This document shows positions 20,720 through 25,642 of a DNA stretch of 64,000 bases, in pieces; position 1 is the first letter of the stretch; each line of letters begins with the position of its first letter. The position numbers and the translations under genes are program-made. The notes under the pieces are model-generated. The model saw nothing but the letters and a program-made list of their open reading frames with translations. It ran no database searches and had not been told where the DNA came from. The stretch lies in the sequence record KU726251.1. One strand, written 5' to 3'.

Positions 20720-20889
20720 ACGAAAAGCTGCAAGAGCTTCTCAAGGCGCACTTTGAACCGTGGATAGTAAGAAAACAAATGTTGTTCAATCGTAACCCTC
20801 GCGTTGATGTTAAGTTCGATGGTAACGCTGTAAACATTTGTGCGAACGACGATTTAAGAGACATTTTGAATTTATTGAAAGGAAAATAA
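20716..20889 (+). CDS. Small hypothetical protein
   Basis: RBS GGAGG, ATG at 20716, 57 aa. Confidence 0.55.
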
Positions 20890-20891
20890 TT

Positions 20892-21929
20892 GTGAAACAA
20901 TATCTTGAGATGATGCAGAACATTCTGGACGAGGGTCATGTTAAAGGCGATCGTACTGGAACAGGGACGCTTTCTGTCTTTGGACGCCAGATGCGTTTTG
21001 ATTTGCGTAAAGGTTTCCCGTTAGTCACGACTAAGAAACTCCACCTGCGTTCTATTATCCACGAACTGTTGTGGTTCCTTAGTGGTGACACCAATATCAA
21101 ATATTTAAATGATAACGGGGTAACGATCTGGGATGAATGGGCTGACGAAAATGGTGCGGTTGGTGAACTCTATGGTGCACAATGGAGACGTTGGAAAGAT
21201 GTGAAACTGGTGCCTAAGAAAAATGCAGCTTTACTCGAGAAACTGCAAGCTGCTGGATACGCGGATTATGGCGACGCGGACGACGGTTCACAAATGTTCG
21301 ATGCGCGTGTACTTCTGAAAGAGCACGACCAGATCTCTAAGGTGATTGACCAGCTGCGTAACGATCCTGACAGTCGCCGTATTATTGTCAGCGCATGGAA
21401 CGTGGGTGAGTTGGATCAAATGGCGTTAGCTCCGTGTCATGCGTTCTTTCAGTTCTACACTCGTGAGCTGTCTATCGACGAGCGTCTTGATTGGTTTGAA
21501 AAGAACCTTCCAGATCAATTTAACGATTCCCGCTTTAGTAATGAAGCTGTAGCAGATGACGCAGTGTTCCACGTTGAGATGGACGCACTTGAAATACCTC
21601 GCCGCATTCTTTCATGTCAGCTCTATCAACGCAGTGCGGATTTTTTCCTCGGCGTGCCGTTCAACATCGCGTCTTACGCATTACTCGTGCACATGGTTGC
21701 CCAGCAGGTTAACATGGTGCCGGGCGATTTCATTTGGACGGGCGGTGACACACATCTCTACTCTAATCATCTGGAGCAGGCCAAGCTGCAGCTGACGCGT
21801 GAGCCGTTACCTTTACCGAAACTGATCATCAAGCGTAAACCGGAATCTATCTTCGATTATAAATTCGAAGATTTTGAGATCGTTGGGTATCAGTCTCATG
21901 AAAAAATATCTGCACCAGTGGCTATCTAA
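20892..21929 (+). CDS. thyA: Thymidylate synthase (ThyA) with two insertions
   Basis: [69 protein letters not shown]. Confidence 0.98.
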
Positions 21930-22727: not shown

Positions 22728-23495
22728 ATGATGAAACTCTTTGCGTTCTCCGATGAATTCTACACGGTGGAATTCGACGACTACGAATACGGGTTATTAG
22801 GGGCCGTCGACATGGAGGACGCTAAACGGCAGCTTCCTACTAGCGAAATAGAAATCATTGAGATTGGGGAAACTAATCTTAGTGGGATTTTGATGCTGGG
22901 GCGGCGACCACGACCTGCGGAACCTGAGCAGGAAAGAGAGCAAGCGCAAGCGATTTGTCTGGTCTATGAGCCGATAGACCCTGCAGCGATAGCGAAGGTG
23001 GTCGATACACTACGGCCACAGATTGGCGTCGCGATTGAAAATTATCGCTGGGCTCGTTTCTCAGGCGACACGCCGATATTTTCGAATAAGCACTGGTTGC
23101 TGTGTATCAACAACGACACGATAATGGTACCTTTAACAGGGGAGAAGAATTTTGAAGATAACTTCGTCCCTGGCGAAGAGTCTGTTATCTTCGAGTATAC
23201 CCATGTCATCGGAAAGCCGAGCTTCTACCAAGTTCTGATTGATGTCTTGACTCACGTCGGTCGAACCATCGAATACCACTACTGGGCACGCCATGCGCGT
23301 TTTAAATGGTTCTCGTTGACGTACGTCGAAGGTTGGGAACGTGTTGTTGAAAAGATTGACGGGCGCTATGAGCAGATTTGGTTCCTGAACCCGGCATTCC
23401 GTGAAGAATTACCCGCATGGGTAAAAGAAGAGGCGAGCAAGCTGACGGTTGGCTTTACTAAGCAGGGCGCGCCGTATATGGTTAACTACAAATAA
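22728..23495 (+). CDS. Hypothetical protein
   Basis: ATG at 22728 with RBS GGAG. Confidence 0.7.
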   Translation: MMKLFAFSDEFYTVEFDDYEYGLLGAVDMEDAKRQLPTSEIEIIEIGETNLSGILMLGRRPRPAEPEQEREQAQAICLVYEPIDPAAIAKVVDTLRPQIGVAIENYRWARFSGDTPIFSNKHWLLCINNDTIMVPLTGEKNFEDNFVPGEESVIFEYTHVIGKPSFYQVLIDVLTHVGRTIEYHYWARHARFKWFSLTYVEGWERVVEKIDGRYEQIWFLNPAFREELPAWVKEEASKLTVGFTKQGAPYMVNYK

Positions 23496-23506
23496 GGTGA
23501 AAACAG

Positions 23507-23986
23507 ATGTCTATAACTCGGATCGATTATCGCGCCGTAGTAAAAGAACTGTCCAAAGGTCTTATCGAACTGGACTCCGATGAAGCCCGTAGCTGTGGCT
23601 TTTTACCGCATATTGCACTAAGCGAGTTCCGCACTATCCGCTATGGCGCTGGTCGTCAGAAAGGCGTTACAACACACGCTGTTGATATGTCAGCAAAGTT
23701 CCACGGCAGCGTTCTGTATCTGGTTCACAACGAAGCGTTACGGAGCGAAGTGGTGGAGAAATTCCATGAAAAAGCCGCTGGGAACGGTTGGCTGACCGTG
23801 CACTGTAACTACTTGCCTGAGGGTTGGAAACGCGCGACGGGTGCTGGTATATCCGGCTACGAGAAATTCGGCTTGGTTATTGTCGATGAAGCGGGTTTCT
23901 TCTTCAACAAGTTCAGTTACGATAAAATCTATCGCAGTCTGGTCGACGTAGTAACGCCAGACGTTGTGATACACCTGATTAATTAA
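23507..23986 (+). CDS. Small single-domain P-loop NTPase-like protein
   Basis: Walker A-like GAGRQKGVTT, Walker B LVIVDEA, 159 aa. Confidence 0.55.
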   Translation: MSITRIDYRAVVKELSKGLIELDSDEARSCGFLPHIALSEFRTIRYGAGRQKGVTTHAVDMSAKFHGSVLYLVHNEALRSEVVEKFHEKAAGNGWLTVHCNYLPEGWKRATGAGISGYEKFGLVIVDEAGFFFNKFSYDKIYRSLVDVVTPDVVIHLIN

Positions 23987-23998
23987 GTAGAGGAAAAT

Positions 23999-24187
23999 AT
24001 GGCTGGAGAACTCGGTCGTGGGCAAGCCACAACGTTCATGTATCGTGATGGGTTAGGTGCGGATGTAAACATGTCTCCGGATGACGAGATGGTTATCCCT
24101 GGACTTGACCCTGACGCAGGTGTGGAAGGTGGCGTTGACCCGTCGAAAGACGACGACAACTGCACTGGTGGTGCGTGCAAGATTTAA
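23999..24187 (+). CDS. 62-aa protein resembling the C-terminal redox tail of class Ia ribonucleotide reductase alpha (NrdA)
   Basis: RBS AGGA, ends DDDNCTGGACKI* (E. coli NrdA ends QDDGCESGACKI*), followed by a terminator. Confidence 0.7.
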   Translation: MAGELGRGQATTFMYRDGLGADVNMSPDDEMVIPGLDPDAGVEGGVDPSKDDDNCTGGACKI

Positions 24188-24196
24188 AATACGTAT

Positions 24197-24232
24197 TAGG
24201 GTGTCCATATGGACACCCTACTTATTTTTTTG
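24197..24232 (+). terminator. Intrinsic terminator
   Basis: TAGGGTGTCC-ATAT-GGACACCCTA followed by a T-tract. Confidence 0.85.
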
Positions 24233-24249
24233 TTTAAGGAGCTATCAAA

Positions 24250-25191
24250 ATGGGCGACCGTTTCATTATCCAGATTCCGTATAACGTTATTGTTGAACCT
24301 AACCAGTACCTGGCACAGATTAATGAGCTTCTGGCTGGATTCTGCCAACGTCAGTTTGTTGAACCGTGGTCCTTTGAGAAACTGTACACCCTGTGCGTGA
24401 ACAGTGAAACCGGTCACACTTACGTCGAAGGTAAAGTATTCACAGGCGACCAGAGTTTGGAAATAAATGATTTCGAAATGCCGTGGACGTTGGAAGGTGT
24501 CGAGTATCGTGGTACGGTTGATCGTCCGCGTTACGTACCTTTGTACACCATCCCACAATGTATTACTAACGTTATGGGTTGGTCTAAAGCGCGTGGTATT
24601 CTGGATAACGGCGTCTGGTATAGCCAAGCCACCAAACTCTACGAAGAAGACGGTGAAGCGGCAACCGGTATCAGTAAAAACAAACGTCGTTACATCATGG
24701 ACGGTATCGGTGATGCTCTGGTCGTGTTGGTTAACTTGATGGAACTCATTAAGTTTGACTCAACCGATATCAGCACATACGTCAACGACGCACGTTCAAA
24801 GAAACCACACGCCGGGAACAGTCATTACCTGTTCCACAAAATGCGTTTCCATCTTACTTGTGCAGTTGATTATATCTGGGATCAGGCAGGCATCGACTCA
24901 GCTAAGCAACTCGAATATAAACACTTCGAGAACAGCGACGCGGTAATGATCGAATGTCACTTCGCTCAGATGGTCGAATACGCCAATGCGCTGGCTATTG
25001 CGTACGATATGACTCTGGAACAGTGCTTCTCCTTGGCGTGGGATGAAATCAAAGACCGTAAGGGTTTCCTGAATGCGGACGGTATCTTCGTTAAAGAAGC
25101 AGACATGACTGCTGCTGAAATCGAAGTAAACGGTTCCCTTACTGTAAAAGATGAGGCGTTTACCGATGGCGAAGAAACTGTTCACGGTTGA
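24250..25191 (+). CDS. MazG-like nucleotide pyrophosphohydrolase with N-terminal extra domain
   Basis: WSKARGI...QATKLYEEDGE...DGIGDALVVLVNL...LEQCFSLAWDEIKDRKG...GIFVKEAD, typical of phage MazG-like proteins. Confidence 0.85.
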   Translation: MGDRFIIQIPYNVIVEPNQYLAQINELLAGFCQRQFVEPWSFEKLYTLCVNSETGHTYVEGKVFTGDQSLEINDFEMPWTLEGVEYRGTVDRPRYVPLYTIPQCITNVMGWSKARGILDNGVWYSQATKLYEEDGEAATGISKNKRRYIMDGIGDALVVLVNLMELIKFDSTDISTYVNDARSKKPHAGNSHYLFHKMRFHLTCAVDYIWDQAGIDSAKQLEYKHFENSDAVMIECHFAQMVEYANALAIAYDMTLEQCFSLAWDEIKDRKGFLNADGIFVKEADMTAAEIEVNGSLTVKDEAFTDGEETVHG

Positions 25192-25588
25192 TTACGACGA
25201 ATACGTTGATCGTTTACTGGTCAACAATATCGTCTGGGAAGACCACGGTCTAATGCCATGGCATCTGAAATTCCTAGCGGAGCGTTCAGAACAATGCGGT
25301 GGTTTGGAGTTCGTACTCACCGACACACCAATTCCGGTACCACACATTGCGCCGGTAGAAAATCTGTACTTCTTCGATGCTAATGTGAAGTTATTACAGC
25401 AGGTACTCTATACACACGACTGGCGTGGTGGTTGTCAGTTCCCAGAGAACGTTTTAAAGCTCTCTGAGCGCTTCGGCACCGACATTGCATATTGCCAAAC
25501 GTTTCCAAAAGACTTGGGACGAAACAGTGTGGTGTTGTGGTATTACCCTCCGGTAGAAGATATCGTAAAAGTGATTATCGAACGCTAA
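25166..25588 (+). CDS. Hypothetical protein
   Basis: ATG at 25166 with RBS GAGG. Confidence 0.65.
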   Translation: MAKKLFTVDYDEYVDRLLVNNIVWEDHGLMPWHLKFLAERSEQCGGLEFVLTDTPIPVPHIAPVENLYFFDANVKLLQQVLYTHDWRGGCQFPENVLKLSERFGTDIAYCQTFPKDLGRNSVVLWYYPPVEDIVKVIIER

Positions 25589-25601
25589 AAATAAAAGCAA
25601 A

Positions 25602-25642
25602 CGAGTACCCCGTTAGGGGTACTCGCATTACTTATTTTTTTG
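25602..25642. terminator. Bidirectional intrinsic terminator
   Basis: CGAGTACCCC-GTTA-GGGGTACTCG with flanking A- and T-tracts. Confidence 0.85.

Follow-up and report, generated by a model that had tools for sequence, protein, structure and literature searches.

The jumbo phage SEGD1 (genus Seoulvirus) carries a free-standing gene of 62 codons whose product, as judged by comparison of protein sequences, ends in a specific likeness, beyond chance, of the C-x4-C redox tail of class Ia NrdA, the alpha chain of ribonucleotide reductase (RNR). The stretch analyzed here (the window) comprises the final 64 kb of SEGD1 record KU726251.1; window positions 23000-25500 correspond to positions 198461-200961 (of 239461) of that record at 100% identity. 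SPN3US, a Salmonella jumbo phage that also belongs to Seoulvirus, is 99.8% identical to the window over the 2.5 kb compared. We refer to the gene as the mini-gene and to its product as the mini-protein. A first-pass annotation of the window had read it as a 62-codon open reading frame (ORF) that encodes the RNR tail alone, and had known of no description of such a mini-protein; our search of the literature on phages likewise found no description of a tail-only protein or of an NrdA-tail mimic.

De novo supply of DNA precursors depends on RNR alone. After turnover of NrdA, residues C225 and C462 are left as a disulfide, which is reduced by the tail cysteines C754 and C759, and these in turn are reduced by thioredoxin or glutaredoxin (bioRxiv 10.1101/2021.07.31.454598; PMC5704485). 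The 24-residue NrdA tail is disordered in crystals (bioRxiv 10.1101/2021.07.31.454598).

Likeness of the mini-protein to the NrdA tail

The E. coli K-12 nrdA gene was retrieved by accession (NC_000913); its 761-aa product ends ...TRDGAEDAQDDLVPSIQDDGCESGACKI, and the mini-protein ends ...DDDNCTGGACKI (for comparison with NrdA, ...VEGGVDPSKDDDNCTGGACKI). When the two proteins are aligned without gaps from the stop codon, 10 of the 16 final residues are identical, and the shared features include both cysteines, their four-residue spacing, and the final G-A-C-K-I. C55 of the mini-protein falls on C754 of NrdA and C60 falls on C759, with the pair ending two residues from the C-terminus. A tblastn search with all 761 NrdA residues against the SPN3US genome and the window (309 kb in total) gave as its top match NrdA residues 747-761 on window positions 24140-24184, an end-to-end alignment, and the top match in the genome of phage CR5 likewise placed the end of NrdA on the end of the mini-gene.

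Searches with a single sequence (phmmer against the PDB, Pfam, and NCBIfam), using either the ORF or its last 30 residues, gave no matches. These searches were blind to NrdA because a 15-residue match is too weak, and the family profile alone reached NrdA. When a profile of 33 family members was compared with 177,635 distinct PDB sequences, the 14 best matches were class Ia RNR alpha chains (E = 0.012 for the best E. coli NrdA), so that the tail resemblance proposed at first pass is recovered by an independent route. Every RNR alignment ended at the last residue, and the matches included 1qfn_B, the 25-residue NrdA tail peptide whose structure was solved in a mixed disulfide with glutaredoxin-1. 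The same family profile gave bit scores of 19.6 for E. coli NrdA, -0.3 for NrdB, and -0.7 for SSB. The end of class Ib NrdE differs, as it carries a C-x2-C motif.

We scanned 2.9 million viral contigs in IMG/VR for frames ending C-x-x-G-A-C-K-I-TAA and found 104 stretches, of which 80 were listed. The 80 comprised ~32 NrdA bodies, ~40 small free-standing ORFs, 6 longer non-RNR ORFs, and 2 spurious frames. The range of residues found inside the Cys pair in the mini-protein family overlaps the range found in genuine NrdA ends, and one NrdA in IMG/VR (L137) has an 11-residue end identical to that of the mini-protein of phage phiEaH2. Four short ORFs, three of 464 aa (L165, L168, and L176) and one of 167 aa (L142), contain a genuine NrdA C-terminal region with its tail; they have the appearance of fragments from split nrdA genes in viral contigs.

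Residues 16-18 of the mini-protein read RDG and are followed by an acidic stretch, as had been noted at first pass. One subfamily, found on ~265-kb IMG/VR contigs, retains an RDG box that aligns with NrdA residues 735-737, which favors descent from the 3' end of nrdA over pure convergence as the origin of the family. A DNA-level search of 5,426 E. coli genomes with the 3' half of the mini-gene gave no match, and the gene is thus not a recent capture of host DNA.

The mini-protein is not NrdA proper. Genuine NrdAs carry an ATP cone, an all-alpha N-terminal domain, and a ten-stranded barrel (PF03477, PF00317, and PF02867), and all three are absent from the 62-aa protein, which matched nothing in Pfam or NCBIfam and lacks the catalytic cysteines. 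What it has in common with NrdA is a C-terminal Cys-x4-Cys closing an acidic tail that is predicted to be disordered. The protein as a whole is strongly acidic (isoelectric point 4.05; 13 of 62 residues are Asp or Glu), and an AlphaFold2 (AF2) model had a mean predicted local distance difference test (pLDDT) score of 55 and no secondary structure, so we regard it as predicted disordered. Profile matches were found to PHROG 38753 over the full length (E = 3.8e-46) and to PHROGs 14561 (E = 6.2e-16) and 24014 (E = 6.6e-14) over the C-terminal part. PADLOC returned 0 families for the mini-protein and six neighbors.

Conservation, distribution, and genomic setting

The substitution pattern indicates that this reading frame is translated and that purifying selection on the mini-gene is strong. 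Besides the initiator Met, 33 of 33 family members share G45, C55, G58, C60, and K61 without exception, and at least 90% of them have D47 and A59; the Cys pair and its spacing are also kept in ~46 IMG/VR ORFs among the matches listed. Between SEGD1 and CR5, the last 21 codons have changed at 13 of 14 synonymous sites and at 1 of 49 nonsynonymous sites. In four diverged phages the variable positions in these codons number 0, 0, and 16 at the first, second, and third codon positions, respectively, and omega (dN/dS) is ~0.03 in comparisons of SEGD1 with SPAsTU and Caitlin. The two halves of the gene behave differently: in codons 1-32, SEGD1 and MET_P1 differ at 6 codons with nonsynonymous changes and at 1 with a synonymous change, against 0 and 1, respectively, in codons 33-62, and we found no nonsynonymous changes in codons 33-62 among Seoulvirus relatives.

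Relatives of the mini-gene were found in 71 GenBank phage records, and its conservation extends over at least five phage genera. All of these records are from jumbo phages with genomes of 220-267 kb, the hosts being Salmonella, Escherichia, Proteus, Cronobacter, and Erwinia. When 1.84 billion representative proteins were searched exhaustively with HMMER, 26 clusters (at 50% identity) had E ≤ 0.001. Members of this set are 39-157 aa long, none has an RNR body, and the match is C-terminal in all but three frame-shifted or read-through members. The family is almost entirely one of small free-standing proteins of Enterobacterales jumbo phages and their metagenomic relatives. In the records of Salmonella phages SPFM6-SPFM15 (LR535904-LR535913), window positions 23000-25500 were matched in 32-33 shuffled pieces that give scrambled "proteins" (P0002, P0005, P0007, and P0008), which looks like an assembly artifact. 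The mini-gene product is annotated as "hypothetical protein" in JN641803 (SPN3US_0234) and NC_027402 (ACQ60_gp032), and gp234 is not present in the supplements of PMC7411985.

The features of the locus are collected in Table 1. The mini-gene stands between an upstream gene that stops at 23986 and a MazG-like gene that begins at 24250. As described at first pass, it has its own Shine-Dalgarno-like sequence and its own terminator-like hairpin, which has a 10-bp stem with 6 G-C pairs, a 4-nt loop (24197-24220), and a T-run after it.

Table 1. Coordinates of the mini-gene, its parts, and neighboring features in the window
Feature	Position	Strand	Description
Thymidylate synthase gene thyA	20892-21929	+	PF00303, E = 1.7e-115; ~2 kb upstream of mini-gene
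gp232-family gene	22728-23495	+	phrog_10453, function unknown; two genes upstream of mini-gene
gp233-family gene	23507-23986	+	phrog_2586, function unknown; adjoins mini-gene upstream
Shine-Dalgarno-like GAGGA	23990-23994	+	4 nt 5' of ATG; read directly
Mini-gene	23999-24187	+	62 codons, stop included in span (TAA, 24185-24187); homologue of SPN3US_0234 / ACQ60_gp032; PHROG 38753
Variable N-terminal half, codons 1-32	23999-24094	+	Length and sequence differ among relatives
Conserved C-terminal module, codons 33-62	24095-24184	+	Acidic-hydrophobic segment, Gly-rich acidic linker, Cys-pair tail
NrdA-like end, last 15 codons	24140-24184	+	End-to-end alignment with E. coli NrdA 747-761
Cys55...Cys60 (C-x4-C)	24161-24178	+	Counterpart of NrdA C754/C759
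Intrinsic-terminator-like hairpin and T-run	24197-24230	+	Begins 9 nt past mini-gene stop
MazG-like nucleotide pyrophosphohydrolase gene	24250-25191	+	phrog_7855, E = 3.8e-145; adjoins mini-gene downstream

The first-pass annotation had seen no nrdA or nrdB body in the window and had asked whether the genome has an nrdA of its own. For this purpose the 240-kb SPN3US genome stands in for the other 175 kb of SEGD1, and two genomes (SPN3US and CR5) were checked in full. No nrdA or nrdB body was found in the window or in the whole SPN3US genome. In tblastn searches of SPN3US and CR5 with E. coli NrdA, NrdB, NrdE, NrdD, NrdG, NrdH, and NrdI (no class II query was used), no homologue was found at E < 0.01, and neither genome has an RNR annotation. 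At 34 loci, no NrdA or NrdB lies within 10 kb of the mini-gene, and among the matches listed no IMG/VR contig bears both an NrdA end and a mini-ORF. A radical-SAM gene pair whose function is unannotated is conserved in both RNR-less jumbo phages (NC_027402 140024-142139 and CR5 132830-134978).

The mini-gene lies amid genes of deoxynucleoside triphosphate (dNTP) metabolism in all lineages examined, unrelated genome backgrounds included. SPN3US encodes thyA, dihydrofolate reductase (DHFR), thymidylate kinase, MazG, and an HD protein. The placement of the mini-gene among thyA and MazG-like genes, to which first-pass annotation had drawn attention, was borne out by the profile matches in Table 1, and the order thyA ... 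mini-gene - MazG is held in Seoulvirus, Machinavirus, and Erskinevirus. The dNTP setting also recurs in more distant relatives: dCMP deaminase and thyA are among the neighbors of the mini-gene in phB78, a dUTPase gene lies directly upstream of it on a 154-kb metagenomic contig (L119), and a dCMP-deaminase-like gene, a deoxynucleoside monophosphate (dNMP) kinase gene, and ThyX flank it on a 60-kb metagenomic contig (L121).

Two further observations concern the neighborhood in the window. In the thyA frame (20838-21929), the Pfam match starts at a GTG at 20892, seven codons upstream of the RefSeq start (20913); the protein has ~90 residues beyond the 266-position Pfam model, and the blastn match to E. 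coli thyA splits into three pieces. A two-way terminator-like hairpin (25600-25626; 10-11 bp stem) lies between convergent genes that end at 25588 (+) and 25643 (-).

Proposed role in the host reductant relay and alternatives to it

From the likeness, the genomic context, and the distribution of the mini-protein, we infer an action on host RNR, thioredoxin, or glutaredoxin, and we consider it probable, although far from assured, that the mini-protein targets the thioredoxin/glutaredoxin-NrdA relay in some way. The functional unit would be the C-terminal ~30 residues, of which the last ~15 would be a homologue or a mimic of the host NrdA redox tail. During infection, the peptide would enter the host relay that runs from thioredoxin or glutaredoxin to the NrdA tail (C754/C759) and on to the active-site disulfide (C225/C462). 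Like the natural tail, it would receive electrons from host thioredoxin or glutaredoxin-1, and its thiol-disulfide exchange with NrdA would take place in trans. The likely net effect would be that host RNR turnover is sustained or raised, with deoxyribonucleotides being fed to the phage thyA/DHFR/thymidylate kinase module. The effect on host RNR may thus be supportive (the peptide acting as an extra shuttle or an adaptor) rather than inhibitory; we hold this preference tentatively, and we favor it because an RNR-less phage amplifies the dTTP branch and because the gene is embedded in biosynthetic modules.

Several observations weigh against this proposal. Host NrdA keeps its own tethered tail, and the benefit of a free copy at a lower effective concentration is not obvious. 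With a class II shuttle domain, attempted reconstitution in trans gave no activity (PMC5704485). Inside the Cys pair SEGD1 has T-G-G-A, whereas the host sequence is an invariant E-S-G-A (in 80 of 80 Enterobacteriaceae species, and also in the NrdAs of Erwinia, Pantoea, and Salmonella). With only 15 residues matched to NrdA, the E value of 0.012 in the PDB search is modest, and it refers to the PDB only. A second conserved segment, ~20 residues upstream of the Cys pair and without a proven counterpart in NrdA, is unexplained by the model. Finally, the Cys-pair tail also closes four different longer non-RNR proteins in metagenomic phages.

With the upstream segment, the conserved module extends beyond the NrdA-like end: a Pro-containing acidic-hydrophobic stretch occupies residues ~28-47, and a Gly-rich acidic linker comes after it. 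In distant IMG/VR subfamilies, the acidic-hydrophobic stretch, the linker, and the tail are all retained, and the letters differ. As a copy of the SSB tip or of the NrdB tail, the segment was rejected at the profile level by the negative bit scores given above. In the mini-proteins of phages phiEaH2 and Asesino (L010 and L011), residues ~15-25 (...DPMDFGDIPG...) resemble the end of E. coli SSB (...PPMDFDDDIPF); this resemblance is probably due to chance, because the profile score of SSB is negative and the mini-proteins carry the motif internally. A more specific form of the proposed role, which we regard as possible but rather doubtful, is that the mini-protein is a two-part mimic in which the acidic-hydrophobic segment would dock on NrdA or on thioredoxin/glutaredoxin, and the copied tail would replace or out-compete the enzyme's own tail and so rewire the manner and the rate of its re-reduction, giving a virus without RNR control over the class Ia reductase of its host.

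The same evidence of likeness, selection, and distribution applies to the opposite outcome, in which the free tail is a competitive decoy or inhibitor that soaks up reduced thioredoxin or glutaredoxin, or fills the NrdA site, and thereby throttles host RNR. Such a decoy could halt host replication or deprive competing phages of precursors, with the phage itself subsisting on nucleotides recycled from the host. A free peptide set against a tethered one is simpler biophysics for a decoy, and the differing residues inside the Cys pair could tune its redox behavior away from that of a productive shuttle. There is also a precedent in Sml1 of budding yeast, a small and largely unstructured protein that competes with the C-terminal region of R1 and so inhibits the regeneration that R1 undergoes through its C-terminal Cys pair (Zhang et al. 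2007, as summarized in PMC6382339). The inhibitory role of Sml1 is established, but Sml1 is eukaryotic, has no sequence relation to the mini-protein, and is not a tail copy. We consider the decoy unlikely, given that RNR-less phages invest in thyA, DHFR, and thymidylate kinase, all of which need RNR products, and that blocking the only source of deoxynucleoside diphosphates fits poorly with the biosynthetic dNTP modules around the gene in all lineages examined.

Fusions found in metagenomic phages bear on a different alternative, that the tail serves a phage partner, e.g., the gp232 family, as a detachable C-terminal arm that some phages would use in cis and SEGD1 in trans. It could tether the partner to thioredoxin/glutaredoxin or to RNR, or it could be the redox arm of the partner itself. 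In a 237-kb IMG/VR phage (IMGVR_UViG_3300011862_000001; 236,909 bp; L198/L105), the mini-protein shares a single open frame with a gp232-family domain (phrog_10453, E = 3.2e-79), and no gp233 gene intervenes, whereas the two are separate in the window. Homologues of gp232 lie two genes upstream of the mini-gene in three genera. Three other long ORFs of 263, 296, and 360 aa, mutually unrelated and each on one or two IMG/VR contigs of 68-320 kb (L157/L175, L178, and L166/L193), terminate in an acidic-hydrophobic stretch and the same Cys-pair tail.

Against a phage partner, the gp232 family has no invariant Cys and so is not an obvious thiol-redox enzyme, and gp232 is not beside the mini-gene in CR5, Phobos, or phB78. 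We detected no homology between gp232 and the other long tail-bearing proteins, for whose N-terminal domains neither Pfam nor PHROG gave a match. Fusions are uncommon (6 of the 80 loci among the matches listed), and they would be explained equally well if the N-terminal content is of no consequence. We judge this explanation to be distinctly less probable than the decoy. A gp232 profile had no match in the PDB, and the AF2 model of gp232, from a shallow alignment, had a pLDDT of 44, too low for the model to be of use. The gp233-family protein had no match in Pfam or PADLOC and no meaningful match in the PDB (best E ~0.4, at chance level); as an obligatory partner it was rejected, since it is the immediate upstream neighbor only in Seoulvirus, Machinavirus, and Erskinevirus.

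The brevity of the match (15 residues; E = 0.012 in the PDB) leaves some room for a convergent likeness whose function is unrelated to RNR, such as an acidic metal- or thiol-binding peptide or a mimic of some other host protein. Strong acidity of the kind seen here is found in many phage anti-host peptides, and the upstream conserved segment had no counterpart that we could find in NrdA, NrdB, or SSB. In our estimate convergence is improbable, however. Among the matches listed from the 2.9 million viral contigs, NrdA and the mini-protein family account for essentially all occurrences of the terminal motif. Variants of the Cys pair overlap with genuine NrdA ends, to the point of identity over 11 residues between the L137 NrdA and the phiEaH2 mini-protein, and the RDG box of NrdA is kept in one subfamily. 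The dNTP-gene setting recurs in unrelated genome backgrounds, and there was no PADLOC match.

Two further possibilities carry very little weight. The small size of the protein, the Gly-Gly in its conserved part, and the two Cys near its end would suit the precursor of a ribosomally made, modified, bacteriocin-like peptide that is cleaved at Gly-Gly before a Cys-containing core, but the pattern of conservation is the reverse of that of a leader and core (the N-terminus is variable and the C-terminus nearly invariant), and no modifying enzyme or exporter lies nearby, the neighbors being thyA, MazG, dUTPase, and dNMP kinase genes; we give this reading hardly any credence. Least credible of all is a decaying 3' remnant of nrdA or an untranslated chance ORF, which the small size of the gene, its annotation as hypothetical, and the absence of an nrdA body might suggest, and which is refuted by the substitution pattern: the dN/dS near 1 that the first-pass annotation named as the mark of a remnant is far from the omega observed, both Cys are conserved in all 33 family members, and the gene has its own ribosome-binding site and terminator and a distribution that covers 71 phage records and 26 clusters.

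Comparison with known systems and significance

Compared with the class Ia NrdA tail (E. coli residues ~738-761), the mini-protein has the same Cys-x4-Cys two residues from the end, acidic residues before it, and an identical final five residues; the NrdA tail is disordered, and the mini-protein is predicted to be so. It differs in that the phage tail is a separate gene, without the ATP cone, barrel, or catalytic cysteines, in a genome without RNR, and in that it has its own residues inside the Cys pair and an extra acidic-hydrophobic segment upstream.

Another small gene that duplicates the C-terminal module of a large radical enzyme encodes GrcA (YfiD), a stand-alone "spare part" version of the C-terminal glycyl-radical domain of pyruvate formate-lyase that acts on this enzyme in trans. 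Unlike the mini-protein, GrcA is folded, takes the place of a piece that has been cleaved off, belongs to another enzyme family, and is encoded by the same cell.

The closest precedent for a separately encoded RNR shuttle module is NrdJb of the class II NrdJa+b RNRs, in which the electron-shuttling C-terminal module is likewise encoded as a separate gene (PMC5704485). NrdJb, however, is a folded, Cys-rich, zinc-binding domain of 150-220 aa whose gene neighbors that of the catalytic subunit it serves, within one organism, and it has no sequence similarity to class I tails (PMC5704485). By contrast, the phage peptide would have ~20-30 functional residues, is predicted to be disordered, and has its presumed catalytic partner in the host genome; a folded zinc domain like that of NrdJb does not fit the mini-protein, which is 62 aa long, contains two Cys, and comes from a genome without an RNR gene. 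Parts of the RNR reductant relay have also been shuffled between genes in Facklamia ignava, where a glutaredoxin is reported to be fused to NrdB (PMC6187632); in this case genes have been joined and not split, and the part concerned is the reductant, not the tail.

Re-reduction of the tail is a defined step of the RNR cycle, yet it is difficult to study. If the proposed role is correct, a free-standing tail that is maintained by selection would provide a natural in-trans probe of the recognition between the tail and the active site and between the tail and thioredoxin or glutaredoxin. Should the two-part mimic prove true, the mini-gene would be the first viral auxiliary gene to encode just the mobile arm of a host enzyme and not the enzyme, and the first natural demonstration in bacteria of a class I RNR tail working, or being blocked, in trans. 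The analysis offers a function-level hypothesis for three PHROG families and ~26 protein clusters that are labeled "unknown." The proposed role would also define a new category of auxiliary metabolic gene, consisting of a peptide-sized piece of a host enzyme, and would explain how some ~240-kb jumbo phages manage without an RNR of their own.

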